A stretch of 30,962 nucleotides of DNA from Macrostomum lignano (GCA_002269645.1 NIVC01004934.1:1-30962), one strand, 5' to 3'. Shown: positions 4,267-30,962, counted from the stretch's first letter. The notes: generated by a model from the sequence alone, not told the origin. Numbers and translations are program-made.

Positions 4267-4268
4267 CC

Positions 4269-4516
4269 CCCCTATTGAGAGTCAGCCTGTCTCAGAAATC
4301 CCCATTGAGAGACAGTCTGTCTCAGAAATCCCCATTGAGAGTCAGTCTGTCTCAGAAATCCCCATTGAGAGTCAGTCTGTCTCAGAAATCCCCATTGAGA
4401 GTCAGTCTGTCTCAAAAATCTCCATTGAGAGTCAGTCTGTCTCAGAAATCCCCATTGAGAGTCAGTCTGTCTCAGAAATCCCCATTGAGTCAGTCTGTCT
4501 CAGAAATCCCTATTGA
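4269..4516. repeat. 30-bp minisatellite, about 8 copies
   Basis: Unit CCCCATTGAGAGTCAGTCTGTCTCAGAAAT repeated in tandem; one copy is shortened. Confidence 0.97.
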
Positions 4517-5519
4517 ACTGCCCGAGCGGCTGACTAAGCCGCCGTGTGCCGAAAGCCCCCAGCCTCAGCGCTTGGGAGAACACGGGTGCCGAATTACGAG
4601 GCCTGAGTCGTGAAAGTAACTATTTTATTTTTAGTACGAACTACATAGTAGCTAATACAACAAGGCAGAAGCTAAAGTTATTTATTTATTCACACTATTT
4701 ACGAGCTTAAGCATAAGGTACGGAAAAGTCAAGACTTTTAATCACCGATTTCATTAGAAAGTACCTTAAAATCACAGACAGGCATTGCACAAACAAAAGC
4801 CGAAATGCAGATCAGCTGATTTCTAGTATTTTCTGCACAGTGTATTTGTAATTTTATTATTCTGAGCGCTTGCGCATCATGCTCAAATTGATACTGAAAT
4901 ATTTAGCTATAATCATTAGTCATGCCAATATCGCAGTTATAAATTTTACATCTAAACAGAGTTGGTGAGAATTAGCAGGTTTCTTTTGTCTGATTAAAAC
5001 TATTTGATTAGAAACAAAAATACCATTGAATACTGTCACTCTATCTACTCACATTTTGGAGAATTCGGCTCATACACTGAAGCCAGTGCAAAAACAGATA
5101 ATGATGGCGTCCACGCTATTAATTCGAGTTTTAGGATATGAGAAATAACAATTCGACAGTAATTGGACTTGCGATATCAAAGCAATTTAATACTCGTACA
5201 CTGACTGGGCTGGCTTAGAAATTTAGATTAATTGTGAGCGGATTGAATGCATTGAGCGAATGGTGGGTCAGGCTTGAGAATACTAATTTGGTTTGATTGC
5301 AGTACAGATAATCGTAAATCACAGGTTAAACAGGGGCGGGATACAGCTTAGCTACTTATTGTTGATAGTTCTGACTAAAAAATCCGAGCAGAGGAACGGA
5401 AAGAGCATTTTCTAGAAAACAAATTCAAGGCTACTTGCCAAAATTAAATGAGAAGGAGTGTTTATTTAGCGAGTTTCCAAGCCCAGATCTCCAAGATCGC
5501 TGGTGATTGAACTGCGAGC

Positions 5520-8500
5520 TCACTGGATCAGCCACTGCTGTGCAGATACCGTGAGGACAGCCAGAGAGCAGACGGCTCCAGCACTGAGCCACGCCAGATC
5601 CATCTTTAGTTGAGCCGACGATTTCGTCTGCGTCGAGTTTCGTGACGACGACTTGGCCGTGGAATTGGTCTTGTTCGGGTCATTTGCCAAAGTTTGCGCC
5701 ACGGTCCGGTGGACGTGCGAAGTCAATTGTTTGGTGGTCTGCGTATGATGTACAATATGTACATTGCGTATGGGCATACTGAACTTATGGTTTGTCACGC
5801 TGGTCAATGTTCTGGCCATAGTGGAAGGGAGTAGGCCTAATCGCTTTTCGTCTTCAGCGGCCAAGGGCTTCTCATCTTGAATGTACAATCTATCGATAGA
5901 CACACTGGACACGTTTGCAGCGGATATGGCAATCACTTTTATAAACATCGGAGGTTCATTGAGAGCCATATACTGATTGTAGATGTTCAACGAAGATTGG
6001 TTGGTGACAGCCAGTTCCGGACAGGAGTAATATCCGTTTACAGCGGTGCAGTTTCCACCTGTTTCTCTGTAGCGAAGACTGTAGACAGGCACATCTGTTG
6101 GAGTCAATTCGGATGAACATGAGCGTTAAAAAGAGTGAAATGTGCATGACAGCTGTGCAACAAATACTCGTATTTGGGGCACTGTTTGCTCTTTGAACCA
6201 GATGCCAAAATGTGTTTTGGTTTTATGAAAAAATATTTTTCAATAAAATTCACATTTCAGCTTGTACTTTAGCAGAGCTGCTTCAAGCGTTACACCTACC
6301 TGCTTTAGGCGGGAGTAGACCAGACGGATCTTTAACTGGATTCCATTTGATCTCAATTATTTTACTCGCATAATCTTTTCTGCTTATATAGATCGCCATG
6401 CTTGGCTTAGGAACAATACGACGTCTGTCAAAGTTGGGGTCTTCCGCCTGAACAGTCAAGGTGCCGCCAGACAATTGCATTTGGAACGGGAACGTGATAA
6501 ACACATCGACAGCGTATTGACGAGCTTTCTGTACTGCATAGAGTGGTACCATGGCACTGTATGCTCCTCTATCTGTACAAATGAAGTATGAGCAATATGC
6601 CTTTTAAATCGCTGTTTAACAACAATAGTTTTTGTAAAGCTGCTACTGAATTTTTAGTCTTCACTTACTGTAATATTGTTCAGATAGATTAAATCGAGCC
6701 ACTTCCTTGTTGCTTGCTGTGACAACTGCGTATATTTGATACTTGTGTTGAATCTGAGATCTTGGTAACAGGTTCACGAAGACACCGATTCGAGTATCAT
6801 ACTTGACCATTGTCACATTATTTGGCTTCACCCTACACGTAGTATCTCTGGGCAGTAAGGCAAATTGTCTTCCTGTGATAACTATAGTCATTGTTGAGGC
6901 CGCCTGTCTGCGAATCCGGCGTGCGAGACCGACTGCGAGATTCGTTAGCGTCCACTTTCCGCTCTGTTGGAGTGGCGGGTTACTATTGTTTGGGAATCCT
7001 TAAAGTTGACGGTTCTTAGTACTCGTAATTAACTGCCTAAACTATACCCCCCATTTCGAATTTTTTGCTCCTGAAAGAGCATATTTAGAATTTAGTAACA
7101 CACTGTTACAGTAGCTGTTAAAATATTGGCTTTTTGCTTTGGCACGTAAATTGGCTCAACTGACCTCTACCTCTGCGTCAGGAATTTGCATTGTCACGGA
7201 TCCGACTGCAACATCAACTGTACAAACGGCACTGCTGCCTCCAGAGCAATTGAAAGTCCTACCGCTCGGCGACCGAAACATGAGGCGCAGAGAGCCAACC
7301 TTGGCGGGATCGCTTGGCAGAAACAGCGAGAAGACGAGGTTGCTGCGAGTACTGACGTCGAATTCCACCGGATACGCAGGTCAGAGGGAACTTGCCTCGA
7401 ATCCAGCTGTGGGAACAAGGAACAGTTCGTACGGAGTCAAACTAAGATGGAAGACAATCGGAATGCAACCAGTGCACTACCTAAGCGCATTTGATTTATT
7501 TAGTAACTTAACTAGACACAACACTAAAAATAGTTTGTCGCTTAAGTAGGTTATGTGACTGATTTCAGAAGAATCCCGTTGAGCATATTTTCATAATGCT
7601 GCAGGATCTCATTGGAGCTCTAATCTCACCCATTTCTCCCCTATCTCTATATCATCTCTCCTCCATCTCTCCCTCGCGTATTTTCCATCTTTTGCATCCT
7701 CTCTCCTTTATTTTACTTATCAATTTAAAATTTAAACTTTCATTTTTAATTTCGACCGATACTTGGTAAGCAAAATAAAGGTAGATCAAAATGAGAGCTA
7801 AAGCTCAAAGAGGGTCCTGATATCTTAGCCTGATATAATAGCTGGCTTTCAGAGTTTTTACGTTACGTTAAAACATCATTTACGTTGGGATAATAACAAT
7901 AGCGACTGTAAAAAGTGAAAGGCTGCTTATTGCTAGTGTTAAGAAGACACTTATTTGCTTCAGTAATTAAGTAACATAATGCATTACTACGTTTTGGCTT
8001 TCACGGCCCCCTGAGAATTTTATCCCCGGTCAACAGCAGACTTAAACCCTTACTCAGACAAAAAGAATTTGGCTGTTGTCGATGAATACAATAATAGATG
8101 GTGAAAGAAGCGAAAAGTAATAAATTTTTGTCGAGCAAGCTTCACAATAGAATTCACCCCAACTCACGACGACGGTCTTGTTCACGCCAGCGAGACCAGA
8201 CTGTAGTGAGGTGAACTCCAGTATTAGTTTGGACGCTGCAAGCTTGCTGTCGACCGGACTATATAGCTTGCGACCGTCCGTGACGTCGGCAAGAAGCGAC
8301 ATCCGCATGTCCGCACTGTCACCGAACCGAATGGTGTCGACTCTGAGGCTCGTTTTCGATATCGCATCGATGGTAGAGTTCAGCTTGCTGCTGCAGCCTT
8401 CCTGACCATCTGAGACCAAAAGTATCTGACCACTCGATCGATGAGTTGGACTTGTTACGTTCTCACCTAGCAGCTGGGTGATTTGATTGAGAAGTAGGGG

Positions 8501-10888
8501 ATTCAGTCAGTGGTACCTGACCTGGACTATGGCTTGACTAAGAATCTGACTGTGCGTAAATCTGTTAAATGACCAAATCACTGACCTTCATAGCCTCTTG
8601 AACAGCTCCACCGATGCAGGTGCTTCCTCCGGCAGTCAGTTTCGAGACGGATTGCATCAGCTGACGTCGAACAGCCGGTGAGTCAACCAGGATGAAATTT
8701 TGCAGCACAGTGGGTCCGCTAGTAAAGCTGATCAGGGCGCACTCTGACCCGGTCTTCAGAGTGAAGGCAATGTAATTGTTCACTGCATTAATCAAATTTT
8801 GCATTCGGTTGTCCTGAATGGGTCCAAAATGAGTTAGAATGAGTTATTGGTGGATAGTAATCTTTGTGTACTTTTGAAATTGACTTTTTAATTGAATAAA
8901 TATAGTCACCTCTTTTGAGCATGTCATTATGAAAAAACTCTTCCACTTGATCCCAAAAATTTGAAAAGGTTACAAAGTTACAAAGAGCAGAGCATGGAAA
9001 GGAAGTGATGCAACTGAGACAAAGCAAGCGGCTTCTCACCGAACGCATGCTACTCGATGTATCCATGACGATCACAACACGGTCTCTTTTGGGTTCAACC
9101 ACTAGACGAAAGTTGAACTTTGAGTTCACTATAGTAGCAGAGCTGATAGGCCGTAGAAAATCCTCGTGGTCTCTGATGACCTCCGCAGCGCTGCGTGCAT
9201 TGCAAAATTTGTTGAGTAAGTTGTCGGCATCCTTGTTGTGCCTGTGCCTGGTGTCGGAGACCTTAAAGTCCGCATCGCAGAAGCGGGTCACTCCGGCGCT
9301 GTAGGGCTCGAACAGGAACGAGGCAACGTTGGAGTACGCAGGCTCGGTCACCACGATTTTGCAGTTGGGTTCGCCGAATTTGCAGCTGCGTCCGGTTTGA
9401 TTGCCGCTGGCCACTTCCAGCTTCACCTGCAGGTCCGGGTTGCAGGAAGAGAGCCTGGGAAGAACTCTGTTATACGAATCCTTGCTCTTCTGTATCGGGT
9501 TACTCAATGGGTCTTCGCTGAACAGGCCCCAGCGGAACTGCGAAAAGTACAGAGCCATAGTCCTGGCCACCGCTGTGGGATGTGCGGATCAGGGTGGAGC
9601 CGTGGCAGCAATGGGGAAAAGCGTGGCTTGTTAAAGTTGAGGGACTTTTTTAACTCAATCAAGTTTCTTAATTGTTTTGTCTCGACATGAAAATATTTGA
9701 AGAAAAAAATGTTAGCTGCTCATACTTTTCCGCTTCAGTTCTTTTATTCATGGCAGTGGATGAAAATACACTAGATTAGCTACACATTTAACCGTTTAAT
9801 TTAAAATTAACTGTTTAATGATTCTATTTCGGCAAGTAGATCTTCAATTTTATTTTCTATATTTAGCTACTTCAACCATTATTCAATTTCGTCAATAGGA
9901 TATTCTATTTCATGCAAAATAGAATAGGATATTTTATTTCATTTTCTTGATGTTTTTATTTTTTCAAATACATACTGAGGAGGTTTTTTTACGGACAAGT
10001 TGGGCCTGATTTTTTGTTGCATTTCTTTAAGTTTGTTCTCTTCACCAATTTTGTTCCATTCATAACAGTCATGTACATGTACAAGGCAGGAGAGGGGAAA
10101 TTGAATGGGAAATCTGCATGCGGGAGCTAAATGTAGCTAAATGCACTTAATGCAGAATGGTGAAATTGAATGTCATCTTGCCGGAATGGAATGTGAGCTT
10201 TGTTGAAGTTGAACTGAAAATGTGTAGTTAGTATTTTTTATCTATATATAGTTTTATCTAACCTAGAGAATCTATTAAGCATCAACAATATGAAGCATCA
10301 AGAGAATTCTTACATTTGTAGATGTTGCTGGACTCGAGACTCTTGGTCGAGAGTTTCACTTTTTCTGCTTGAGCTCCGCAGAAGAAGTCTTCCCACACTA
10401 CACCCTCATCAGACTCCTTGATGTCTGGAGAGACAACGAAATCCGCGTTCTCTGGCCGCTGCCACGTCGCTGGGTGCAGCTGAAGCCTCGAATTGTTCGA
10501 TTCGGCGAGCTTCTCACCCAGACTGTGCGGCAGCAGCACGCTGACCTCGCCGAAGCCGAGACGGCGGCCCACAGTATGGGTGAGCTTCTCCAAGATGTCC
10601 GAGGCCTCCCGAAGGGCGGTCTGAAAGGTCAAAGCAGCACTGGATATTCTCCCAGACTTCAGTTTCAATATCACACAATCCTAGCGTATTATGCCTCACC
10701 TGCAGCACATGAAGTAGATGAGCATAGTGCTTCTCCTGCACGTTGCCGTCTGCAGGTATTTGCACAAAGACTAGCAAGTCGTTATAGTAGCCGTCATCAG
10801 CGAGATGCAGTTTGCTTGACGCATCGAGCTGGATGCAAAAAGCAGCCAGAAAAGTCATGAAGATTGTGCTGACGTTTTTTAGCCTCAT
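5520..10888 (-). CDS. CLCA: CLCA-family (calcium-activated chloride channel regulator-like) secreted/membrane-anchored protein, ~990 aa, 9 exons, with a degenerate protease motif
   Basis: GT-AG exons: 10888-10700, 10620-10314, 9572-9040, 8813-8586, 8473-8168, 7406-7171, 6963-6669, ~6600-6300, 6094-5520. Domain order: signal peptide; CLCA N-terminal domain (GYYNDLLV, FGEVSVLLP, RWGLFSE, VTRFC, HNKDADN..NKFC, EVIRDHEDF); vWA (RVVIVMDTSSSM, GGSTCIG, LLVSDGQE); beta domain (FRSPSG, DAESGKWT); SGGTLTV plus FnIII-like (IEIKW, YSLRY); Ser/Thr stalk; hydrophobic C-terminus. There is a 1-nt frameshift near 7375 and the exon 7/8 phase is unresolved. Confidence 0.92.
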
Positions 10889-11354
10889 GTTTAAGGATTC
10901 TGTGCAGATAAAAGTTGGCAGAATTTCTATACTGAGCGTTGGCTCTGCAACAGATGAACTGGGGCTGGCAGGCAACTCAGCTCGAAGCGAAGCCGCTCCT
11001 CTCGATCTCGACCTGTACTCGCCTCAGAGCCATGGGAGTTTCAGCCACAGACAGAAATTCTGCTGAGCTGCCGGCTTAAAGCTTCGTGCATAAATTTATT
11101 GCTGTATAAAAGTACTTTTAGACGAAACTCCAAAACAGGGCGGCTCGAGCGGCAGTAAGCGGCAAATAGTCTATGGGCCTGAGGGCGGTCAGGCTTAGGA
11201 AACAGGTTCAAGTTGAACTTGGGATAACAAAATATCAAAGCAGACAGTGCTTTTCAGTGAAAGAGTGAGGAAAGAACAAGATGTACTTTTATTAATCGTT
11301 GTCATTCTTGAAATTACTTTAATAACAAATTAAGCCATGAGAATCAGGCAATGA

Positions 11355-11700
11355 GGCAAACAAAGCGGCGTTTGGCGAGCAAGAGGCGGATAAGCTGCGC
11401 GGCAGCATAAATAGGCAGGCAGCCTCACAGTTTAAACCCGTTTGAAATGGTGGCTCCTTCATGTTTAACATGATGGCACTTTTATGTTTGAAATGGTGGC
11501 TCTTTTATGTTTGACATGGTGGCTCTTTCATGTTTGAAATGGTGGCTCTTTTATGTTTGACCCTCACAGTTTAAACCCCATCACCCCGCACCACGTACAT
11601 TGGCAAGCGACTGAACGCGCAGAGTAGTGGACACAATAAACCATGAGGATCTGGAAAGGCAAGAAGGCAAACAAAGCGGCGTTTGGCGAGCAAGAGGCGG
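11355..11700. repeat. ~36-bp direct repeat pair downstream of the tyrosine recombinase (possible DIRS/Ngaro terminal repeats)
   Basis: GGCAAACAAAGCGGCGTTTGGCGAGCAAGAGGCGGA occurs at about 11355-11390 and 11667-11701. The repeat is seen directly; the DIRS interpretation is inference. Confidence 0.7.
11440..11561. repeat. 23-bp tandem array (~5 copies) flanked by a 17-bp direct repeat
   Basis: Unit GTTTGAAATGGTGGCTCTTTTAT; CCTCACAGTTTAAACCC occurs at 11423-11439 and 11562-11578. Confidence 0.92.
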
Positions 11701-11814
11701 AGAGCGCAACGAAGCGTTAAAGTGGGAGCAGAAAACAAACACCCAACCCCAAAGAGGATAAGACAGTTAGAGTAGAGACGGGAAAATTAAAAACGCGACA
11801 CCATCTGACCGACC

Positions 11815-12425
11815 GCCCGAGACTTGCGGGCAACAGAATCACCGTCACTGAAGAAGTAGCGCTTCACACAGTCAGAGCGCCAGTCACCCAGGGCCATGAT
11901 ATCAGGCAAGGCCACCCACCCCTTCCTGCAGGGCAAAGCTGGCCCCACCGCGCCGCAGGCTGTGGCCGGAGAAGGTGGACGGGTTGAAACCGCAGTTACG
12001 CAGTGCCTGCCGCAGAAGCGGGGTCAGCATACGAGGCTTCAAACGCAGCCTCCGCGAGCCCACGAGGTAGGAGAACAACGGGACGGTGGCGCCGATGCAG
12101 GCCGCACCGGCCAGGTAGGGCAGCTGCACCGTGCGGACACGCTGGCCGAACTGGTTGGTCTTGGACCGCTGCAGCTGCAGCACCAGCCCAGAACCGGAAC
12201 AGGACAGATGGCTAGAGCGCAGCAGGTCGCCGACTCGGATCAGCTCCCACCAGGCCACCAGAAAGGCGGCGCAGAATGCAGACCACAGCTAGGTTCGGAG
12301 CGAAGCCTCGACGGGCCGCAGGGTCGCTCGCAAGCCGCCGCAGGTGAGCAGGCTCGAGCGCCGTCGCCTGCTTGGTCTGTAGCCCCAGGAAGCGCCGAGC
12401 GCCCCTTAAAAGGAACTGCAGCCGT
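11815..12425 (-). mobile_element. Tyrosine recombinase of a DIRS/Ngaro-type retrotransposon, 5'-truncated and frameshifted
   Basis: LLRGARRFLG...Q; AFLVAWWELIR (catalytic R); RSKTNQ (K); FSGHSLRRGGASFA (HxxR); after a frameshift, IMALGDWRSDCVKRYF (W and catalytic Y). Confidence 0.88.
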
Positions 12426-12579
12426 GCCGCATATCAGACAGGGTAAAAACAGAGCCCAGCAGTCCCTACACTATAGCTTTAGCACAGATACAGTGATTTG
12501 AGTTGATAAGTATAATAAGCTTGTTATATCTGCTGAGCTCATCTGCTGAAATCGTTCTGCCCGTTTACATGCGTGCAGC

Positions 12580-13125
12580 GTTTGTGTTCCGCACTACACC
12601 CAGATGGCCATCGACTCGCGCACCCTGCTTAGCCCGCCGCCACTCTCTTTCACTGGAGTGCCACACGAAGTAGGACGACACCTCCGTGTAGAGCAAGGAC
12701 CCAGCAAACTCTTCAATACGGCACAGCTTGAAAAATGGCGTCCACGTTGAGTCCCTCTTAAAACAAAAGCGTTCTCGCTTTTTATCTTGCGATACCTTCG
12801 TTAAAATACACGACCTGCTCCTCCGACTTGTGAACGTATAATCGGATGACCGCCATAAACCTGTTGTGCACCTGACCAGAAAGTGGAAGGAAAATATACA
12901 GCCTTAAAGTTTCGATGGAAATTCAATTTATACTTTGACGAGGTGTTCACAGCTCTGGTTAAAAGAGCCAATAATAATTAGAATGCGAATTACTTCAAAG
13001 CCCAAGATGGTATTCACGGCTTCCATTAGACCAATTTAGCGCACGGACAGGTACTCCTTGATCTCATCACGCGGCTCATTTTCTGCCATTTGCGTCTGCT
13101 GCTAATTAACCACTGCCTGCTCTCT
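12580..13125 (-). mobile_element. Helitron Rep/Hel fragment (region between Rep and helicase), decayed
   Basis: Decayed frames read PRDEIKEYLSVR..EAVNTILGFE, HNRFMAVIRLYVH..EQVVYF, TPFFKLC..EEFAGSLLYTEVSSYFVW..REWRRAKQGARVDG. These match the Helitron patterns DEI..Y...R, RL.VHL..Q.V.F and FA..LLY.EV..Y+.W. Confidence 0.8.
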
Positions 13126-13329
13126 CGGTTCAGTAGAATTCTTATTGGCATCGACTTTGAGCAAACACGAGCAATCTGAGCAAACATGAACGCACGGCAT
13201 ACAAGTGGAGGAGCAGACTAAATATGAAAACGCGCTAGCACCCACACGTGCACCCCGCCCCCCGCAACACACGCAACCCCGGACGCACCCCCCGAGCCAA
13301 GCGAGCCACCTCACCCCGCAGTTTAAACG

Positions 13330-14150
13330 CCCTTACCACCAACACAGTGGCAAGGGTAACAGGAACTCTTTCTGAAAGCCCTTGCTGCATTCGCCATTTT
13401 CCATGCAAGGGCACACCGGATTCTCCTGCCGCAGGGGCCATGGATCATGTGCGTCTTCACCAGCTCATAGAGCACGGGCTGCTGCTCTGAAATCTCGGCA
13501 GACACGATGTCATCGTATCGGTCCGGAGTCACCCGCTGACCGCTCGTGAGCCATAGCATATTATGGATAATTTATTTCGCAAAATATGTTTTAAAATATC
13601 TCGCAGACTTACTAAATGTGTTCACCAGATGGTCGACGGTCAGGGTGAATCACAATTCGCGCATCTCCCAACTGCGGATCATGGCTGATTCGATGAGCGA
13701 CTGCCTTCAGGCTGTGGACATAGCCGTTGCACTCGTGAAGCAGCGTCTGCAGCAGCTCCGGTAGCTCTGGCTTCACCTTCTGGCTGAGACTCTGGCGGCT
13801 TTCAAGTTCGCGATCGTTGAAATACACCTGCCAGCCATGGGGCTCAGCTGAATCCTCTGCAAACAGCGGCGCCGTGTTGTGATGCAACTGGCCGCTGATG
13901 ATGAAGCTGGGACTCCAGTCTGGTACCAACCGCAGTTTGGCTCCCAGCGACGTCAGGTGCAGCCCCGAGTTGTAACTTCTAATGTTGGTTAGGAACTCGG
14001 CACTCATTCTGCGCCGCCCCAGGTACAGATCCGCCAGCACTTGAAGCACTGTGCGTCTGGGCAGCTTCACCTCGCCTTTGGCGTAGCAGAAATTCCTCGT
14101 CTCAGAGCACCAAAGTAATGCACCGCATTGGTCGCATGCTCTGTCCATTG
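13330..14150 (-). mobile_element. Helitron Rep N-terminal fragment with an internal deletion removing most of the HUH core
   Basis: MDRACDQCGALLW..E...GEVKLP, FLTNIRSYNS...TSLGA, ISGQLHH, QVYFND, ECNGYVHSLK, IVIHPDRRPSGEH, joined across a short AT-rich stretch to LWL..VTPDRYDDIVSAEI..VLYELVKTHMIHGPCG. Confidence 0.9.
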
Positions 14151-18473: not shown

Positions 18474-20271
18474 TTATTGCCCCCCGAAACAGCTTGCTGA
18501 AACAAAGCAGATTTTTTTCTTTTTGTGAAGTATTCGTTTCGTGCTCTTCTTCAATGTGCTGGTGCCACGTCGAGCCATTTTGCAATGGGCCTCAGACTGC
18601 ACCCCGCTCTTGCCAGAGCTGCCAGGGTTGGCAGTAGCCTTCCCTTTTTGGCAGACTTTCCTCGGCGCATCTTGAGCTTGAGAGCACCCCACTGGAAAAA
18701 GGATCCGTTAAGGTACCGACTGGCCCAAGCGTTTTAGAGGCCGAGGACAATTGAATTGCCCGTTTTCCCCCCTGCGGAACTTGCGGTGATACACCAGTCC
18801 ACTAGCAGGGAGGTCGGGATGGTGTGCCGTGGTTTTGGCCTCAGCAGCCGCAGCAGCATCTCCAGGGGGCGCCGCCGCTGAACTGCTGAAGCTTCCACCG
18901 ACCGGCTTGTCTGGTTGTCTTGGGAATCCAGTCGCTTCAGCACTCATAGTGAGCGCCGCCGCTTTGGCCCCCGCAGCTTCCTTCTTGGCCTGCCGCTTAG
19001 CGCGTTGCTTAGCGCGTTTGCGCTCAAGCCGAGCCCGTTGAGCTTCGTCGGATCTGCCAGATTTGGCTGGTCATTTAGACTCAGAGCTCGCGGTTCCCTT
19101 AGATCCACCAGCAGAGCTGGCAGGTTTTTGGATACTTTGGGTTTGGTAGCTCTGGTCGGATCTGCCTGCAGAGCTAGTCGGTCCTCCCTTTGCCACAGTT
19201 GAATCAGTCGGTTGGGATCGACCAGTAGGGCCGGCCGGTCCTTCGGACTGAGATTGGGGTTTAGAAGGGTCCACGTCCCTAGATATAGTTTGCTTATCCA
19301 TAGTCTTCTCGAAGGCCATGATAAAGGTTGGTGGGCTACAATCGAAGAGGCGCGGTACCCACCCGGCCGCTCCAACTGACCGGGCAGTAGGCCAAAAGAA
19401 CCCTCAAGGCTGGCCCGACACCAGGAGGGACAACTCCCCGGCCTTCCAGCCCATCGGCACGGTCGAACACCTTAGGCATCAGAGGGTACCGTTGAGCAGT
19501 ACCATGGCCTCTGGATCGGCTTGCGAGACAGGGTGGGGGGTCTGCGGCTGCTAGAGGCAAATAGAGGGTGCAGAACTCCCACCAACCTCTTCACCATGCT
19601 GAAGATGGGGCAGGCGTGAAGCATGGCAGACCTTAGCCAATGGGCCTGGCCTATCTCATCATGAAGTTGGATGGACGGAGGCATTCTTGTCGGTGTTCAT
19701 TGGCACCTCAGGTGGGGGGTCTGCGGCTGCTAGAGGCAAATAGAGGGTGCAGAACTCCCACCAACCTCTTCACCATGCTGAAGATGGGGCAGGCGTGAAG
19801 CATGGCAGACCTTAGCCAATGGGCCTGGCCTATCTCATCATGAAGTTGGATGGACGGAGGCATTCTTGTCGGTGTTCATTGGCACCTCAGCGACTCCTCC
19901 TTCGGAGTGGCTTGCAGCGCCTGGCCTGTCCAGTGTAATTTTCATCCCCTGGCTCAAATCGCCGAAATCAGAGTTCTTCGCGGCGGAAGCTTGTTCTTAG
20001 TCTTGTTTGATGCGCGCAGCTCTTCTGCGGCCTTAATCACCTTCCACCGGTTGTTTTCTTGCTGGCGAGAGTCCTTGCTCTGCACTCTATGCCCTCGGTG
20101 CGCAATTGGCAACCTACTGCCAGTAGTTTCACATTGATCGCACACAAGCCGACGTGTCACGCTGCACGAGTCCCTCTCATGATGCCTGGGTGATACACCA
20201 CCTAAAAGGCAGACCTCACAGCTTAAGCAAACTTCGTACAGCTCTTTGTCGCCACTTTTGAAGGTCTTCAT
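18474..20271 (-). pseudogene. Decayed long reading frame: Cys/His zinc-knuckle-like region followed by a low-complexity basic tail (possible gag-like ORF1)
   Basis: CEVC..HHERDSC...CDQC...HRGHRVQSKDS, then collinear frames rich in S/P/K/A (e.g. AQRARLERKRAKQRAKRQAKK) broken by stops. The family assignment is weak. Confidence 0.35.
19532..19889. repeat. Tandem duplication of 179 bp
   Basis: 19532-19710 is repeated at 19711-19889 (GGTGGGGGGTCTGCGGC...TTGGCACCTCA) and looks identical by eye. Confidence 0.95.
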
Positions 20272-20544: not shown

Positions 20545-22475
20545 TAAGACCTCATGGAGCATGCAGATTCTCATACTGCTGCAGGACCTCATGGAGCATG
20601 CAGAATCCCATACTGCTGCAGGACCTCATGGAGCATGCAGATTCTCATACTGCTGCAGGACCTCATAGAGCATGCAGAATCCCATACTGCTGCAGGACCT
20701 CATGGAGCATGTAGAATCCCATACTGCTGCAGGACCTCATAGAGCATGCAGAATCCCATACTGCTGCAGGACCTCATGGAGCATGTAGAATCCCATACTG
20801 CTGCAGGACCTCATGGAGCATGCAGAATCCCATACTGCTGCAGGACCTCATGGAGCATGTAGAATCCCATACTGCTGCAGGACCTCATTGAGCATGTAGA
20901 ATCCCATACTGCTGCAGGACCTCATGGAGCATGCAGAATACCAAACTGCTGCAGGACCTCATGGAGCATACAGAATCCCATACTGCTGCAGGACCTCATG
21001 AAGCATACAGAATCTCATACTGCTGCAGGACCTCATGGAGCATGCAGAATCTCATACTGCTGCATGACTTCATGGAGCATGCAGAATCCCATACTGCTGC
21101 ATGACTTCATGGAGCATGCAGAATCCCATACTGCTGCAGGACCTCATGGAGCATACAGAATCCCATACTGCTGCAGGACCTCATGGAGCATGTAGAATCC
21201 CATACTGCTGCAGGACCTCATAGAGCATGCAGAATCCCATACTGCTGCAGGACCTCATGGAGCATGCAGAATCCCATACTGCTGCAGGACCTCATGGAGC
21301 ATGCAAAATCCCATACTGCTGTAAGACCTCATGAAGCATACAGAATCCCATACTGCTGCAGGACCTCATGAAGCATACAGAATCCCATACTGCTGCAGGA
21401 CCTCATGGAGCATGCAAAATCCCATACTGCTGTAAGACCTCATGGAGCATACAGAATCTCATACTGCTGCAAGACCTCATGGAGCATACAGAATCCCATA
21501 CTGCTGCAGGACCTCATGGAGCATACAGAATCCCATACTGCTGCAGGACCTCATGGAGCATGCAGAATCTCATACTGCTGCAGGACCTCATGGAGCATGC
21601 AGATTCTCATACTGCTGCAGGACCTCATGAAGCATGCAGAATCCCATACTGCTGCAGGACCTCATGGAGCATGCAGAATCCCATACTGCTGCAGGACCTC
21701 ATGAAGCATACAGAATCTCATACTGCTGCAGGACCTCATGGAGCATGCAGAATCTCATACTGCTGCATGACTTCATGGAGCATGCAGAATCCCATACTGC
21801 TGCAGGACCTCATGGAGCATACAGAATCCCATACTGCTGCAGGACCTCATGGAGCATACAGAATCCCATACTGCTGCAAGACCTCATGGAGCATACAGAA
21901 TCCCATACTGCTGCAGGACCTCATGGAGCATACAGAATCCCATACTGCTGCAAGACCTCATGGAGCATACAGAATCCCATACTGCTGCAGGACCTCATGG
22001 AGCATACAGAATCCCATACTGCTGCAAGACCTCATGGAGCATACAGAATCCCATACTGCTGCAGGACCTCATGGAGCATACAGAATCCCATACTGCTGCA
22101 GGACCTCATGGAGCATACAGAATCCCATACTGCTGCAAGACCTCATGGAGCATACAGAATCCCATACTGCTGCAGGACCTCATGGAGCATACAGAATCCC
22201 ATACTGCTGCAAGACCTCATGGAGCATACAGAATCCCATACTGCTGCAGGACCTCATGGAGCATACAGAATCCCATACTGCTGCAAGACCTCATGGAGCA
22301 TACAGAATCCCATACTGCTGCATGACTTCATGGAGCATGCAGAATCCCATACTGCTGCATGACCTCATGGAGCATGCAGAATCCCATACTGCTGCATGAC
22401 TTCATGGAGCATGCAGAATCCCATACTGCTGCATGACTTCATGGAGCATGCAGAATCCCATACTGCTGCAGGACA
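20545..22475. repeat. 37-bp satellite array, about 52 copies
   Basis: Unit GCATGCAGAATCCCATACTGCTGCAGGACCTCATGGA with point variants. The ORFs over it are repeat artefacts. Confidence 0.98.
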
Positions 22476-22959: not shown

Positions 22960-23851
22960 CAAATTGCAAGTCAGTGCCAGTTCCTTCTGTCTGTCTCTTC
23001 CGCATCCCGCATCCGCATCCCTCCCCAAACTCTCTCCTATCTGTCCCAACTCCTCCCCATCTCTCTCCTATTCTCACCCCTATTTTCCCCATCACTTCCC
23101 CACCTCTCTGGCATCTCTCTGGCATCTCTCTCATCTCTTGCTTATCTCTCCCTCAACTCTCCACAACCTCTCCCCATCTCTTCCCAGTCTCTTCCATAAT
23201 CTCTCTGCCATCTCTTCCCCATCTCTTTAGCATCCAAATACTAAAAATGGTTTGTCGGTAGGTATCTATCTCTGTGATCGATTAGAGAAAAAACGGCTCA
23301 ACCGATTTTCTTCGAATATCTTCTAACTTCCTCTCCTATTCTCTCTCCCATCTTTTCCCCATCTTTCCCAAACTCTCCCATCTTTCCCCATTTCCCATCT
23401 CTTTCTAATCTCTCTCTTATTCTCTCTTCCATCTCTCTAATTATCTCTCTTATCTCCCCCTCAACCCTCCCATCCATCCCGTCTCTCCCCAATCTCTCGC
23501 CATCTCTCTCCCATTTCGTGCTAATATCTTGCCATCTTTTCCCCATCTCCCCCCGTCTCCCCCATTTCGCTCCTTCTCTCTCATCTTTTTCTCTTCTCTT
23601 GCCCATCTCTCTCCCCTTCTCTCTCCCATCTCTTCCCCATCTTTGCCATTCTCTCTCATTCTCTATTTTACATGTATCTCTCCTCAGTTTCTCGTCTCCA
23701 CCTATATATTCTCTTTCCCATCTCTTTCCCGTCTCTCTGGCATCACTTCCTCATCTCTCTGACATCTCTTCTCCATCTCTTTCCCATTCTCTCTTTTATC
23801 TATTTTCCATCTCACTCTTATTCTCTCCCTCCAATCTCTCCCTATCTCTGC
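22960..23851. repeat. CT-rich polypyrimidine low-complexity tract (left part)
   Basis: Near-continuous (CT)n/CCCATCTCT-like sequence. Confidence 0.9.
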
Positions 23852-24690
23852 CAAGGACTACACCTTTTTACGTTCGATTTTGAACAAAGTCCAGTTCTAA
23901 AAAAACTAGCGGAAATTCAATTCAGACAATTCAGACTGGGGCAACAAACCCCAGTTCAAAACATTATGCAACCGAAGCAAGTTTTAGCCATAGACAAAAT
24001 TGTCCCCAGTCTGAATTGCCTGAATTGAATTTCTGCTAGAACTGGACTTTGTTCAAAATTGAACCAAAGACGACTTAAGTAGAAGGACGGGAAACCTCGT
24101 TTCTTAGAAAAGTTTTGAAGGCACTTTTTCCCGAAAAAATACACTACGGAGATTGGAAATTTTCATTTTTTCAGCACAAAAATTGCTATTACTTTTGATA
24201 GGAGGCAGATCCAGTGTTCATCTTTTGATATGTTGTGCCTTTTTTATTGCTCTATCGATATTTATAAATCTTTTCGTTCAGATTATTTTATCGGGAGGAA
24301 GTGCCTTCAAAAATTTTCTAAGAAACGAGGTTTCCCGTTCTTCTACTTAAGTCGTCCTTGAATTGAACGTGAAAAGGTGTACTAAAGTAACATATACTCG
24401 TATATAGGACGCTACACTCGAAATATATGGTAAATGTTTTGAAGGCAACTTTTCGCCGAAGAATTACCTTACAGAGATAGGAGGTTTTAATTTTTTCATC
24501 ACAAAAATTGTTATTGCTTTTGATAGGAGAAAGACCCAATGTTTATCTTTCGATATGTTGTGCCTTCCTTATAGCTCTATTGGGATTCATAAAGCTTATT
24601 TATTTATAGTGTATTTTTTGGCGAAAAGTTGCCTTCAAAACATTTACCATAGATTTCGAGTGTTGCGTCCTTCTACTTAAGTAGTCCTTG
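23852..24690. mobile_element. Composite CAAGG-ended foldback/MITE (P- or hAT-superfamily-like), 8-bp TSD
   Basis: Starts CAAGGACTAC (23852) and ends GTAGTCCTTG (24690). Flanks are ATCTCTGC (23844-23851) and ATCTCTGT (24691-24698), a 7/8 match. Internal inverted arms lie at ~23878-23945/24000-24060 and ~24390-24460/24619-24670. Confidence 0.8.
24065..24360. mobile_element. 296-bp MITE nested in the element above, perfect 8-bp TSD
   Basis: Terminal inverted arms of ~60 bp run CAAAGACGACTTAAGTAGAAG... / ...CTTCTACTTAAGTCGTCCTTG. The TSD AATTGAAC is at 24057-24064 and 24361-24368. Confidence 0.9.
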
Positions 24691-24698
24691 ATCTCTGT

Positions 24699-25255
24699 CT
24701 GTGCAGATTCAGGCACAGTCATTGCCAGTTCCCTTCTGCCTGTCTCTCCAATCGCGCACTCAACCTTCCCCAAACTCTTCCCCATCTATACCATCTCTTC
24801 CCCTTCTCTCTCCCATTTTTTCTCGATCTTTACTCTATCTCTCCAATCTCCCCCATCTCTCTCATCTCTCCAACTTTCACCCATCTCATCTCCTATCTCT
24901 CCTTCAACACTCCCCATTTTTACTCCATACCTCCCATCTCTCTCGAATTTCCCATTCTCGCATTCTGTTCCCATCTCTCACTCCTTTTGTCGCCCATTTC
25001 TCTCTCATCCCTCTCTCATCTCCCTCATCTCTTCCCATCTTTCTCGCATTTCTCCTCCATCTCCCTACCATATCTTTCCCGTATCTTTCCCATATCTCAC
25101 GTATCTTTTCTCTACTGTCTCTCGATTTTCCCTCCAACTCCCCATCTCTCTCCCATTCTCTCAGCCATCTCTCACCGTCTTCCTTCCCCCGAGTTCTCCA
25201 CCGTCTCTCCCCTCCGTCCCCCAACTCTTTCCCGATCTCTCCTTCAACTTCACCT
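24699..25255. repeat. CT-rich polypyrimidine low-complexity tract (right part)
   Basis: Same composition as 22960-23851; resumes after the MITE. Confidence 0.9.
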
Positions 25256-25504
25256 TCATTGTAGGAGGGCATACTTTATGAGATGTTGCCCGCATTGCTA
25301 CCCACACGGAATGCACCTGGGTTACCGACCCATGGTGCAAGCTTGTTAAATGTCTGTTTTTATTTAAAACTGCAAGCACAAGGCATATTTATGAACAGAT
25401 AAACCTACGCCCACATTGCAGACTTGGGATTTCTACTGAAGCACAGCTAGCTCATCGAGCAGACCGACTGCAGTCCCAGAGACCAAGTTAAAGACTCAAT
25501 CAGC

Positions 25505-28500
25505 ATGAGGCATCTCGCTGCTGCATTCGCATTGCTGGCGGTGTCGCTCTGCTCAGCTGTGGCTTTGCCGGTCGCGTTGGCGCCCTTTCTATCCAAGGCT
25601 GCCATCATGACTGTAGCCAGAGACGCTGCCATTAACTCTGTCGTAAGCTCGCTTGTAGACAAAGTCTTGAACGGCGGCGGCGGCGGTGGCGGCGGCGCTG
25701 GTGGCGGCGGCGGCAATTTGATCACCAGCTTGGTCAATTTGAGAAAACAGAACGAAGAAACGCTCAACGAGATGATGAAGTCTGTCGGCACCGCACCGAA
25801 TCCGCTCATCACCCAGGAATCGATGAATAAAATGGTCAAAGACTGGTCCCTCCAACCACAGAAGGCGGGAACTCGCTCCATCAGCCTGCAGGCCGATCAG
25901 GGCTTTAACGGACTCGGAAACTACCAGCCTCCAGGATGGGTGATGACGGAGACTTTGAGCGGCCCAGCGAACAAAATACCGCAAATGACGGACGAGAAAG
26001 TACCGGTGTATCAATATCCGAAGGGAGTGGGTCCGATGCTGATGAACGGCTGTACGGGTCAATTCTATTCAAAAAGTAGTCCCTGCAACTCCAGCAAGCT
26101 CGCTGCTCAGGGACACGCAGTCTGCCCGAACCTCCTGGAAGCCGCCGCCTACGTGGGCGTAGGTTTCGACGGTCGCGGCTTCTACAAAATCGAGAGCCGC
26201 AGGGCCAGCCTAGTGCAGCGTTACTGCTCCAACAAGGCCAGCTTCCAAAAAAAGACGTTCCCGACTCGATGAACGTGTTCGGCATCTTTGAGACTACGGC
26301 AGAGACCAAGTCCTTCCAGTCTGGAGGGGAATACATGAACTACATCAGAGAGAAGGCCGGCCTGTCAAAACAGAGGAATCTATTTCGCAGTGAGGCCAGC
26401 AAGCACAGCACTTCCGTTTCAGCAACTATCAGCGCTTTTAGCATTTCCTCTGCTTCAAGTGCGACCGGTTACGGCGAATCGTCCTCGGTAAAATCTGGTG
26501 AATCGGTCTCGGAAAATGTTCAGACTGAGAGTTCCAATATGCGGCAGGGGGCTTCTAATACCTTTTTCGCCATCATGTATGTCAGCGTCATCATGTACGA
26601 GATCACTCTGGATGATGTGAAGCCGCAAGACATCAACTTGGCTGCTCTCAAGGACTACATGAGCTTGCCGGAGTCCTACTACTCGGTTGGCGCTGACGTC
26701 AAGTACCAGAACTTTCTGCTTCGCTGGGGCACGCACTTTATTCGGTCTGGAAAGTTTGGCGGCCAGTTGAAGATCACAAAGACTGCGAAGATGAACAAAG
26801 TAAAGTCTGTGGCGGAGTTCGCCAGCATCGCCGAGACAGAGTTCCAGTCAATGTTTGCGTCACTGCAGTCCAGGCACCTGCAGACAACAAGCAAAGTTAG
26901 CACTCCTTTTTATGGCGGACAGATAAAGTCTGAACATCAAAGCTCATCGGCAAAATCCGGAAATAGTCGCGTCAGCACAATGAACCAGAAAAACCAGCTA
27001 TCTCAGAGCTCAAGCCAATCCGAGTTCACTCAAACTAGCGTCGAAGCTCAAGGAGGAACGCCGGAGATCGCGGAGGCTCTCGTCGACTTTTACACGCCAT
27101 CGTTCAAGTCTTTGTATCACAAATGGATCGTCTCAATCAGCGACTACGTGAAGCCGTTCGAGTTCCAGCTAAAGCCCATCGACCAGCTGTTCAATATGAA
27201 CATGGACGACCTTTTCCTGTCTGGGAACTTCGATTTTGGCTGCATGGGAGGGCTGGCAGCAGTAACAAAGTAAAGATTTTGGTGGAGCCTGGAACCAATC
27301 GCAGATACCATCTTGATGAGCAGACTGAATTCCGAGACAACCGGACTGAGACTAGACTAGTGAAGACCTACTGCAAGTACAGAGACCTGAATGAGTTCAA
27401 GACTGATCTGGACAGGCGAACAATCTCTCTGGAGAAAGCAGTTGCGGTCTACATGGCAGAAGGTCCGTTTCCGACGTCAACCTACGAGCTGGAAGCTGGG
27501 CAGTCTGGCTGCGAAGAGAAGACCTTGGCTCAAATCGACACACTGGACTCCAAGTCAAAGCCTCTGACTTTTCTGCAGCTCAAAACAGCGCCGTTTCTAA
27601 TTTCATTTGACCTGCCTGAGGAGATACCAAATTTGCTGCAAAGACAAGCAAAGTACGCTGTGGTCTATCGAGGAGACAGATGGTTTGCCACTGAGCCAGG
27701 AAGCCATCTTGCTCACTTGTATGACGGTTGCCAATTGGGCAACTACAAGCTTGAAGAGCGTAAGAGCAAACCAAAAATCTGCATTTGGAACATTATCCTC
27801 ACCTATGAGAACAACACGGCTTTTTCTACATTGACCACAATGACTTTTCTGCATCTAAACGCCGCAACCCGTTGATTCCGGGCTGGATGTCTGGCTTAAC
27901 CGTGGCCAGAGCTTCAAGTCTGAGCATATCGAAGGACCCTGCCTCGACTCCCGAGTCAGTGCCGTGCAACGTGAAGTGGCTAAACTCCCACAGACTCGAT
28001 CCCAGCAAGAATGAGAGCTGTCTGCACTTTACGGCCGCCACTGAGGGAGACATCTTTGTGATTTTTGCATCCATTCCAAGAGATCAGTCAACGTGGTACT
28101 ACCTGCAGATCAATGCAGAGGGTGTTCTGTTTTACAAGCAATGAAGCTGAAAAAGCGCGACGAAAATAGGGGCATGGGGACACTGGGAGACAGGAACCTG
28201 TACCAGTCCTACTTTGTGTGCGTACTCCAGTCCAGTGGCTCAGTTCTGATGCAGTTTGGAAAGGCAGATGCCACAAGTGAAGTCGGCACTGTCTACTCTG
28301 GCTACAAGTTTCCGCAGGACAGCCAGTACAGTCGTTTATCTTTCTATACATTTGGCGCAGGCTCAAGGCCAGTGTCTCTGATGGACATTCGACTCACCAA
28401 GCAGATGCCAAAGGTTCGATGCTTGAATAATAACTACAAACAGGTGGATGGTCACTGCGTCCTTGACTGTCATGCAGAGTGTATCGACTGCACTTTAGCA

Positions 28501-29340
28501 AATGATGACACCAGCTGTTTCCAGTGTCGCAATGTCCGGATTGTGACGAAAAGTTATACTGGTGACTTAGTAGTAAAATGCTTACCAGTGTGTCCGAGGG
28601 GCTTCCAACTAAGCGACAGGGCTGAGAAGCTGTGTGTTCCATGCAGCCCTGGCAGCTTCAAGAACTCAACAGGCAACCAGAACTGCACGCCATGTGATCC
28701 TGGTACCTTCACCGAGTCTGAAGCACAAACAGAGTGCAAAAAGTGCAGCCCAGAACTTTTACTGCCAACTGGAGATCTCAAACGTGCAAGAAGTGCGCAG
28801 AGGGCACGTCAGCGGCCTCAAAAGGATCTGTTTTGTGTAGGCCCTGCAGCCCCGGCTCGTTCGCGCAAGTTGGTCAGGCACAATGCACTCCCTGTCCGCT
28901 CGGCCAGTTCAACAGCGTAGATGGACAGTCTCGGTGCCAGCTGTGCTCTGTGGGCTATTTTGCTGCCACCGGGCCTCACTTCTTGGATCCGTGTCCCAAC
29001 GGAACAACAGTACAGCGGGCTCAGCGAGTTGCGAAAACCACTGCAGAAGGGGAGAGTTCAGTCCGAGCAAAGGCATCCCATGCAGAAAGTGTTCGGCCGG
29101 TACATTTGCAGCCAGTATGGGCGCGAAACTGCACATTGTGCCCCGCAGGCACATTCGGTCAAGAGACGGCCAGTCGGCATGCACAGAGGCTCCGGCAGGA
29201 TCGTACGTCGGCATGCACAGAGGCTCCGGCAGGATCGTACGTCCCACTTGCTGGATCGACAAGCAGCACTCCGTGTCGATGGGCACCTTCAACCCGTAAA
29301 CTGGAAAGTCCAGACGTCTGACTGCTCTCAGAAGGGGCAG
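25505..29340 (+). CDS. Secreted MACPF (perforin-like) multidomain protein with C-terminal furin-like and GCC2/GCC3 (ephrin-receptor-like) Cys repeats; apparently intronless; frameshifted in this sequence
   Basis: Signal peptide MRHLAAAFALLAVSLCSAVA; poly-Gly; YVGVGFDGRG..(D)VPDSMNVFG; exact MACPF signature WGTHF-x6-GG (WGTHFIRSGKFGG); Ser-rich TMH-like segments; PFEFQLKPI; then CHAECIDC and repeated C-x2-C-x-PG(S/T)F-x8-C. Frameshifts near 26250, 27255, 27868, 28140 and 28750, more after 28990. The true 3' end is uncertain. Confidence 0.88.
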
Positions 29341-29531
29341 CATATAGGTGATAAAGTTTGCCGAAGTCGCAGTGTATGGAGTGTGACCCTCGACTTTTGG
29401 TAACAAAAGCTAATTGGAAGCTTCGGTTTGGAAACTGACTCAGATTTGACTAATTCTTCATCAGCATGAATTTACTGCAGCAAACACAGCAATCTGATTT
29501 GTGAGCTTTTTTACCATTGCTAATTCTGCCT

Positions 29532-29805
29532 CGCATTCTCCGCCATGCAAATTACATGATTCACTTTAAATCAGCTCTGATTCTCCCTCACATTCTCCGC
29601 ATGCAAATTACATGATTCACTTTAAATCAGCTCTGATTCTCCCTCACATTCTCCGCCATGCAAATTACATGATTCTCTTTAAATCAGCTCTGATTCTCCC
29701 TCACATTCTCCGCCATGCAAATTACATGATTCTCTTTAAATCAGCTCTGATTCTCCTCACATTCTCCGCCATGCAAATTACATGATTCTCTTTAAATCAG
29801 CTCCA
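29532..29805. repeat. ~57-bp tandem repeat, about 5 copies
   Basis: Unit CACATTCTCCGCCATGCAAATTACATGATTCTCTTTAAATCAGCTCTGATTCTCCCT. Confidence 0.95.
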
Positions 29806-30528
29806 TTCTTTTCTTCTAGAATCAAATCAAAATTCCTAAATCCCTAATTAAAATTCGTCTTCGATTTATGATCTGCTCTAATTATTTTAATTTGATCTCC
29901 AACTACTTTTGGTTTGTAATAGCTGGCATATTACACGCAATTTATTTACAATCACTAATGAAGATGAGTATAGAGGAAATTCCCACCAGTGCTTCACCTG
30001 TAATATCAGTACCAATATCGTACCTGTAATATCCTACCGATAATGGGTAGATAAATCCGAACTAAAAATCTCGCATACTAGTGCTAATGCTTTGTTTTAT
30101 GAATCATTATTTCTGTGGAATTTCATTTCCTACCAAACAGTTTAATCGTAACCAGCTGATGTACCTGGCAATACCATCTCTATTTACTTCACAAAGTTAA
30201 ATATTGAGCATGCAAATCGAATTAATATCTTAATACATTGGTGCGACCAATCCAGACCAATTAATTACACCGCAAACAGTTTTGCATCTCTGTGCAATAT
30301 AATTCATTTTGAGGTCAGGTGTGACCTTCATTCATGAAGTACTTCAAAGTAGTTAAAAAATATGGGGCGCAAAAATGCTTTGGATGAGCAGCTAGCTCGG
30401 TGAGACCAGCCACTCTCAAGGTTTGTTTTAATCAGAAAAGAAAGACGAGCTGCCAATGCTCATGAACTCCGGTTCGACGTAAAAATTTCAAATTGCCCTT
30501 TTGACATGACTAATGACTAATTGACATG

Positions 30529-30686
30529 CACGAGCTGCAGGCCTGTCCCGGACTCGCAGTGGCTGTATGTGATCGAGAAGTCCCTAAAGACTGAGAAGCG
30601 GAAGGGGAAATTCGCTATCTGGTCAAGTGGGCCGGCTACGACCCGACTGGCTGGGTAGACGACAAAGACTTAAGAAAAGTTTAGCT
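30529..30686 (+). mobile_element. Chromodomain with preceding ELQ motif (Polinton/Maverick integrase C-terminus-like), frameshifted
   Basis: HELQ / PVPDSQWLYVIEKSLKTEKRKG / RYLVKWAGYDPTGWVDDKDLRKV*. Confidence 0.7.
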
Positions 30687-30722
30687 GGTTGATTCAACTG
30701 TCATTATTTGTTCAATCGTACT

Positions 30723-30954
30723 ATGAAGAATATTGCCATCAACAGTCAACATGCTGAAGCACTCCTAGTGTCTTTTATTTTCACCTGTCTTCACCTATTT
30801 ACTTAAATCGAAATGTGGACTATGAGGCAGGTCTGGCTGCATGGTTCAATGTTGACAAGCCTTACTGCATCACTGTCTCAGATGGAAGAGAGCATGAGGC
30901 CCTTGTCCTGATCAAACCTGATCAATTTGGTCTCGATGATGCTGCTCAGGAATA
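30723..30954 (+). mobile_element. Polinton/adintovirus-like minor capsid (penton) N-terminal remnant
   Basis: MKNIAINSQHAE / LSSPIYLNRNVDYEAGL..WFNV...DG...VLIKPDQFGLDD resembles the penton N-terminal pattern PI.L...YE+GL...W.N+...IP.G.Y, and lies directly after the chromodomain. Confidence 0.5.
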
Positions 30955-30962
30955 GCGATGGT

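Follow-up and report, generated by a model that had tools for sequence, protein, structure and literature searches.

We analysed a 30,962-nt stretch of the Macrostomum lignano genome (GCA_002269645.1, NIVC01004934.1:1-30962; hereafter the window), in which positions 25505-29300 of the + strand correspond to a single, colinear and intronless gene encoding a MACPF protein. The gene is read as a series of open reading frames (ORFs), which runs from 25505 to about 29300 (+) and steps through frames 2, 1, 0, 2, 1, 0, 2 and 0. The encoded order is a signal peptide, a poly-Gly tract, a MACPF domain, an unassigned domain of about 200 residues, a beta domain, a furin-like Cys unit and GCC2/GCC3 repeats. 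All the features of the gene listed in an earlier reading made from the DNA alone (the sequence-only reading) were recovered on this strand by translation, Pfam and Tandem Repeats Finder (TRF). Moreover, its proposal that the MACPF domain is joined to a C-terminal beta domain of lectin fold and to a GCC2/GCC3 stalk was borne out by Pfam, AlphaFold2 (AF2) and Foldseek.

The gene starts with an ATG followed by a signal-peptide-like N-terminus, MRHLAAAFALLAVSLCSAVA (25505-25564, +; translation, assigned by eye). Comparable hydrophobic N-termini were found in the intact homologues P0006 and P0010 (P numbers designate proteins of our set) and in the ORF of the closest paralog, locus L001. A (GGC)n microsatellite at 25670-25717 (+; TRF, period 3, 14 copies) gives rise to a poly-Gly tract. 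This tract had been described as a poly-Gly pro-region; the tract is there, but it is best read as lineage-specific low complexity and not as a conserved pro-region, because it is not present in the aligned M. lignano paralogs. The region that precedes the MACPF domain, QKAGTRSISLQADQGFNG...YQPPGW...MNGC (25859-26140, +), is conserved in the family, as judged from its alignment to the L001 ORF, P0001 and P0004, and a Pfam search of it gave no family.

The MACPF domain (PF01823; 26141-27216, +) is split by a first frameshift at about 26246. It was detected with an E-value of 1.6e-14 and 55 bits, versus a cut-off of 21.5, in the ORF at 26269-27270, and with 49 bits in the stitched protein. The MACPF signature WGTHFIRSGKFGG (26725-26763, +; translation) is an exact W-G-T-H-F-x6-G-G; its core, G-T-H-[FY]-x6-G-G, was present in all relatives inspected, with either W or Y in the first position. 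According to their position relative to the MACPF domain, two Ser/Thr/Gln-rich segments were assigned to the places of the transmembrane hairpins TMH1 (26377-26580, +) and TMH2 (26845-27057, +). The TMH1 segment of the window copy is devoid of the Gly/Ala-rich part found in other flatworm copies. This hydrophobic part, of about 35 residues (GGxGxxxGAxxGAxAGGPxxAxxGAxxGGAxGG), was observed inside the TMH1 segment of P0001, P0006 and the L001 ORF, and gave a weak Gly-zipper match in Pfam, which is unusual for MACPF.

The next domain, a "mid" alpha/beta domain of about 200 residues (27264-27871, +), was delimited from two alignments, A1 and A2, and from AF2. It is entered via a second frameshift (about 27250) and interrupted by a third (about 27818), and is characterized by a conserved RRxSLExAxxVYxxEGP helix and two conserved Cys. 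The mid domain had no Pfam match and no PDB sequence match, and PDB sequence searches with an intact paralog, with its N-terminal 985 residues and with the module profile gave no match to the mid and beta domains. The AF2 model of the combined mid+beta module, built with a 25-sequence alignment, had a predicted local distance difference test (pLDDT) score of 83.6. The mid domain, corresponding to the first 215 or so residues of the model, was folded into a beta-hairpin, a long helix and a small sheet, with pLDDT mostly between 80 and 94.

The beta domain, HFTAATEGDIFVIF..WYYLQI..SYFVCV..MQFG (27959-28401, +; AF2, Foldseek), is interrupted by a fourth frameshift at about 28139. It corresponds to the C-terminal 150 or so residues of the model, which form a beta-sandwich. 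Foldseek, run on the whole mid+beta model with matches driven by the sandwich, returned galectins-1, -2 and -7, legume lectins and LamG with a probability of about 1.0 (E-values of 1e-4 to 8e-4; TM score to target of 0.55-0.59). Methyltransf_FA (PF12248), the N-terminal domain of proteins like farnesoic acid O-methyltransferase (FAMeT), has the beta-sandwich fold in common with the beta domain, as do the galectin, legume-lectin and LamG folds. It was matched by 3 of 25 relatives with 15-21.5 bits, near full-length (profile positions 3-127 of 140) yet below the gathering threshold of 24.2; neither the window copy nor the M. lignano paralogs matched this family. The model points to a ConA/galectin-like sandwich, distantly similar to the FAMeT N-domain. 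The FAMeT-like or lectin-like character suggested by the sequence-only reading was thus retained at the level of the fold, and remained weak at the level of the sequence, with its sub-threshold PF12248 matches in three relatives.

The sandwich is followed by a furin-like, Cys-rich unit, CLNNNYKQVDGHCVLDCHAECIDC...CLPVCPRGFQL (28414-28611, +), assigned from its Cys pattern alone and conserved in the paralogs, for which no Pfam model scored above threshold. The gene ends in heavily disrupted Ephrin_rec_like (GCC2/GCC3) repeats at 28630-29296 (+), which matched PF07699 with E-values down to 5.7e-13 (48.9-49.1 bits versus a cut-off of 23.1), in seven stretches of the stitched protein.

A 786-residue core query, searched against a collection of 5.8 billion protein sequences, retrieved four proteins only, the best two of which were both from M. 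lignano: A0A1I8J970 (1296 residues) and BOX15_Mlig021963g3 (1221 residues). When these two proteins were compared with the window by tblastn, colinear matches were obtained across each frame change. The gene pieces are parts of one gene and not chance ORFs, as the homology to paralogs is colinear through every frame change. A frameshift-aware alignment, guided by the genomic ORF of the closest paralog (L001, on NIVC01004190.1), covered 25727-29273 with 61% amino-acid identity over about 1220 positions and needed nine frameshifts. L001 has one intron of about 97 nt near its 3' end, which the window copy does not have. The ratio of non-synonymous to synonymous substitutions (dN/dS) against this paralog was about 0.15, with dS saturated. 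Among the annotated or transcript-derived proteins searched, none was more than 66% identical to the window copy, and two of the window ORFs, looked up exactly in public assemblies, gave no match.

The L001 copy itself (about 8924-13766) has a continuous frame from the ATG of the signal peptide, with one in-frame stop in its TMH1 region (SSQSA, stop, KNSQ). The annotated L001 protein (P0002) starts inside the MACPF domain because of this stop, and L001 may be a pseudogene, or contain an error of assembly, as well. Another M. lignano model, P0007 (UniProt A0A1I8JDZ1), fuses a retrotransposon reverse transcriptase (RT)/RNase H to the mid, beta and Cys part, which suggests the insertion of a transposable element into another paralog of the family. 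An interspersed repeat, 82-88% identical, is common to the window (19428-19836) and the L001 locus (2649-3009).

A profile of the region between the MACPF domain and the Cys repeats (alignment A1, 383 positions) was searched against 1.84 billion cluster representatives. A total of 198 representatives was matched at E ≤ 1e-3, and 49 at E ≤ 1e-30; in long matches the mid+beta module was located at residues 570-950 or thereabouts. Against the sequence that heads alignments A1 and A2, the window pieces showed 52-68% identity. The matches whose clusters were looked up came from the lancelets Branchiostoma floridae and B. belcheri (many genes), the hemichordate Glandiceps talaboti, the brachiopod Lingula anatina, Nematostella vectensis and M. 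lignano. The same core was found in five animal phyla. The module was found directly after the MACPF domain and before the Cys repeats, and the order was the same in P0001, P0006 and the amphioxus proteins; the domain order of the gene, for which the sequence-only reading had advised a search of other genomes, thus occurs from Nematostella to Branchiostoma. Proteins with this core include, besides the two M. lignano proteins named above, XP_035696659 and C3YB58 of Branchiostoma, XP_013392189 of Lingula, A7RF41 and A7RF42 of Nematostella, and XP_077985079 of Glandiceps. Their identity to the window copy was 52-61% within Macrostomum and 30-35% across phyla. They have complete frames and a C-terminal module, whereas the window copy is frameshifted and has neither this module nor the Gly/Ala-rich part of TMH1.

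In six long matches, Pfam detected the MACPF domain upstream of the module, and Ephrin_rec_like repeats together with CTLD, SRCR, F5/8C, SUEL, HYR, Sushi or EGF domains downstream. One M. lignano paralog ends in a Kringle domain, and the intact paralogs end in either a Kringle or a galactose-binding-like domain. The Branchiostoma proteins P0015, P0033 and P0023 end in tandem hevein-type chitin-binding domains (Chitin_bind_1, E-value of 1.7e-11), which hints at fungal, arthropod or gut-chitin targets. The members of the family have a fixed core, composed of the signal peptide, the N-terminal region, the MACPF domain, the alpha/beta domain of about 200 residues, the ConA/galectin-like sandwich, the furin-like unit and the GCC2/GCC3 repeats, behind which an interchangeable C-terminal recognition module (CTLD, SRCR, F5/8C, SUEL, hevein, Kringle, Sushi/HYR or EGF) is placed. 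All the members looked up bear the name "uncharacterized protein" or "MACPF domain-containing protein", and a literature search by domain, organism and accession found no paper on this MACPF-mid-ConA-like-GCC family. From these comparisons, the architecture is old (cnidarian-bilaterian ancestor), widespread in marine invertebrates and undescribed. The sequence-only reading had called it unfamiliar; it is indeed uncharacterised, but with its core present in five phyla it is not rare.

Overall, about ten frame-disrupting lesions were counted in the 3.8 kb of the gene, in addition to a terminal TAA at 29297, and the frameshifts that had been noticed earlier are real in the sequence as given. All lie on the + strand and, except where another source is given, were identified by local inspection and alignment. 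One base was lost at 26246 between CCAAAAAAAG and ACG, in an A7/G run, which changes the reading from frame 2 to frame 1, and one at 27250 in a GGG run, ATGGGAGGGCTGGC. One G was lost at 27818 (ACGG/CTTTTTC, where the paralogs have TGFF; comparison with P0005), at 28139 (TACAAG/CAATG; expected YKAMK) and at 28753 (AGCCCAG/AACTTTT; expected SPGTF). Similar single-base losses were located at about 29000 (AA), 29157 and 29278 (C), and a +1/-2 event at about 29126. Moreover, a perfect 34-bp tandem duplication (29173-29243; 2.1 copies; TRF, 100% matches, score of 142) shifts the frame in a Cys repeat, and the TAA stop (29297-29299; local inspection) falls within a repeat, after ..CPMGTFNP.

In the terminal repeats, conserved Cys were replaced by Phe (about 28982, by eye), by Ala (CTEAPAGSY) and by Ser (GSTSSTPC, by eye); the Ala replacement was also lineage-specific in the relative-rate comparison. 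A tblastn search of 29200-30962 with the C-terminus of L001 (its last 330 residues or so) gave nothing significant. A 57-nt tandem repeat in five copies (29523-29803) lies directly 3' of the truncated gene; its copies vary in homopolymer length (CCGCC/CCGC, CTCCC/CTCC), a type of change like that of the frameshifts in the gene. An in-frame TAG at 27806 was rejected as an artefact of the alignment guide, which carries a deletion there. Programmed frameshifting is implausible, as the sites, about nine in number, have no motif in common.

Considering these lesions together, we regard the window copy as a recently inactivated pseudogene, a paralog of an unnamed, ancient eumetazoan family of large secreted MACPF proteins, with a probability of about 0.55. 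The dN/dS of about 0.15 indicates that, over most of its past, the copy was under constraint as a coding gene and, with dS saturated, that its inactivation, if real, was recent relative to the duplication. A real pseudogene is favoured by the adjacent CLCA-like gene, in which no frameshift was observed in 1,569 nt of exons, when three to four would be expected at the rate of the MACPF locus (P of about 0.02-0.05). Sister copies seem to be decaying too, as seen from the TMH1 stop of L001 and the RT/RNase H fusion of P0007. The window copy does not have an intact ORF ending in a C-terminal recognition module, a finding whose frameshift part hinges on the accuracy of the assembly. The working immune or toxin effector envisaged by the sequence-only reading is unlikely to be encoded by this copy, because it is frameshifted, has lost conserved Cys and has no C-terminal recognition part.

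Several observations nevertheless weigh against inactivation. All or nearly all of the single-base events are deletions, and at least four of the losses are G-after-G contractions at places where the paralog fixes the expected residue; contractions of G runs are what consensus errors in long-read assembly typically leave behind. No premature stop due to a substitution was found in the 3.75 kb before the terminal TAA, and a relative-rate test detected no excess of amino-acid changes on the window lineage (69 versus 64, p = 0.66), in a comparison weakened by the possible decay of the other copy. We therefore weighed a competing explanation, less favoured but to be taken seriously, according to which the gene is intact in the animal and the 1-nt frameshifts, perhaps with the 34-bp duplication, are consensus errors of the assembly in a poorly polished, paralog-rich region. 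In that case, the locus would encode a functional secreted MACPF protein of about 1,260 residues with a short Cys-repeat tail. The placement of the 1-nt deletions in short homopolymers, G runs in most cases, is consistent with such errors, as are the high protein conservation in every frame segment (reflected in the low dN/dS), the lack of lineage-specific acceleration and of internal nonsense substitutions, and the homopolymer-length variants of the downstream 57-nt repeat. Indel discrepancies between M. lignano assemblies do exist, since UniProt models of the CLCA-like family contain stretches that look frameshifted relative to the window (P0168). However, the CLCA-like exons in the same window are free of frameshifts, and a 37-nt tandem array at 20548-22474 shows 0% indels. 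Lesions other than those in homopolymers, namely the replacement of Cys by Phe, Ala and Ser, the TAA within a repeat, the loss of about 330 C-terminal residues and the 34-bp duplication, also argue for the pseudogene, as does the failure to find a matching expressed or annotated protein.

The CLCA-like/VWFA gene is located at 8171-10888 on the - strand, possibly extending to about 5520, and has at least five exons, identified by homology (10888-10697, 10626-10315, 9573-9058, 8813-8586 and 8491-8171), with gaps of about 70, 740, 245 and 95 nt. It was 99-100% identical to the M. lignano protein A0A1I8G4I5, which marks the window as DNA of this species, and 82-85% identical to paralogs. The window is repeat-rich, with several tandem arrays. 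The 37-nt array comprises 52 copies (95% matches), and several of its frames are open, giving spurious ORFs of up to 343 residues (e.g., 21368-22399). A CT-rich, microsatellite-like tract (23045-25300; periods of 9-34, GC skew down to -0.70), located directly upstream of the start of the MACPF gene, also yields long spurious ORFs, rich in Ser, Pro and Leu. A retroelement fragment with a reverse transcriptase match (RVT_1, E-value of 1.4e-22) was found at 2653-3738 (-), adjoined by an ORF made of SLSQKSPLRV repeats at 4137-4613 (+).

Among the pore-forming effectors that animals use in immunity and as toxins, MACPF proteins are the main group, with targets set by their accessory domains. We infer pore formation by intact members of the present family from their membership in this group. 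An intact member would be secreted, and its sandwich and variable C-terminal module, carried on a rigid Cys-repeat stalk, would bind surface glycans or microbial patterns. After binding, the MACPF domain would oligomerise and its two helical clusters would refold, so that the target membrane is damaged or perforated, in defence or in prey/predator interactions.

Some results stand against a lytic function. The segments at the TMH positions (66-99 residues) are very polar, with 56-66% of S, T, Q, N, G or A, and their beta-periodic hydrophobic moment did not exceed that of shuffled sequences (z of -1.3 to +0.3), in a test run without a positive control. Some animal MACPF proteins, such as astrotactins, BRINPs and Torso-like, are not known pore-formers, and the literature searched gave no expression or functional data for any member of the family. 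Intact members might then be non-lytic, with the MACPF fold serving a matrix or adhesion role, signalling, or pattern recognition of the opsonin type; such roles have been proposed for astrotactins, BRINPs and Torso-like. The unusual polarity of the TMH segments, their lack of amphipathic periodicity and the Gly/Ala-rich, zipper-like stretch that they have instead in flatworm copies are compatible with this, as is the very large size of the proteins, with their long stalks and extracellular-matrix-type modules (EGF, Sushi, HYR, Kringle). We consider it improbable all the same, given that the signature and a second GG motif are strictly conserved across phyla, that both insertions at the TMH positions are kept at roughly canonical length, that the C-terminal modules (CTLD, SRCR, hevein, SUEL, F5/8C) are of types that typically bind microbes or glycans, and that the amphipathicity test had no positive control.

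Compared with known systems, the MACPF domain resembles that of perforin-1 and complement C6-C9 in its Y/W-G-T/S-H-F/Y-x6-G-G signature and in having segments at the places of the two TMH clusters. Perforin-1 and C6-C9 combine a pore-forming domain with a C-terminal targeting domain, a general design that the present family would have in common with them. In a phmmer search of all PDB chains with an intact paralog, C7 and perforin-1 were weakly matched around the signature (E-values of 0.06-0.4). The present family differs in having no EGF/C2, TSP1 or LDLa domains, where perforin-1 and C6-C9 have EGF/C2 or TSP/LDLa; unlike in perforin and complement, targeting would use the lectin-fold sandwich, the Cys-repeat stalk and the variable modules. 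Two other proteins were set aside, as Ci-MACPF1 of Ciona (TSR, MACPF and EGF) has an unrelated architecture and the complement C6-like proteins of amphioxus have a different one.

In MPEG1/perforin-2, P2 is the domain that follows MACPF, and the protein ends in one transmembrane helix with a short tail in the cytosol. It is very improbable that the locus belongs to this family, even if the gene is essentially intronless, as in MPEG1. In the phmmer search MPEG1 gave no match; the MACPF domain is followed here by the mid domain, the ConA-like sandwich and the Cys repeats instead; and neither a C-terminal transmembrane helix nor a short cytosolic tail was visible by inspection in the intact paralogs. 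In favour of MPEG1, 13 "MPEG1" genes were counted in M. lignano in one report (PMC10781884).

In concept, the family resembles apextrin (MACPF and ApeC) and Pomacea PV2 (MACPF and tachylectin chains), which are lectin-coupled invertebrate MACPFs (PMC8361754; bioRxiv 10.1101/2019.12.23.880021). The idea in common is that of a MACPF domain which, in aquatic invertebrates, is delivered by a module binding carbohydrates or peptidoglycan; their lectin modules are ApeC or tachylectin, whereas here a ConA/FAMeT-like sandwich and GCC2/GCC3 repeats are found. No ApeC or tachylectin match was obtained with Pfam on the window protein and ten relatives. We tentatively propose, as a possibility short of our favoured reading of the locus, that the core with its swappable lectin, SRCR and chitin-binding modules defines undescribed pan-eumetazoan pattern-recognition pore-formers ("modular lectin-perforins"), ranging from cnidarians to cephalochordates, lost in vertebrates and expanded in amphioxus and Macrostomum. 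They might constitute an immune effector arm of invertebrates alongside complement, perforin and MPEG1, in which the mid domain of about 200 residues, perhaps a new fold, would couple the binding of a target to the activation of MACPF.

On its own, the window copy contributes little; it shows either birth-and-death turnover in the duplicated genome of M. lignano or a problem of assembly quality. The MACPF-mid-ConA-like-GCC family to which it belongs includes about 380 residues for which there is no Pfam model. If its intact members are lytic, the family would count among the candidate immune effectors of Macrostomum and amphioxus, and would offer a simple model of the way in which a perforin engine acquires different recognition modules by shuffling.

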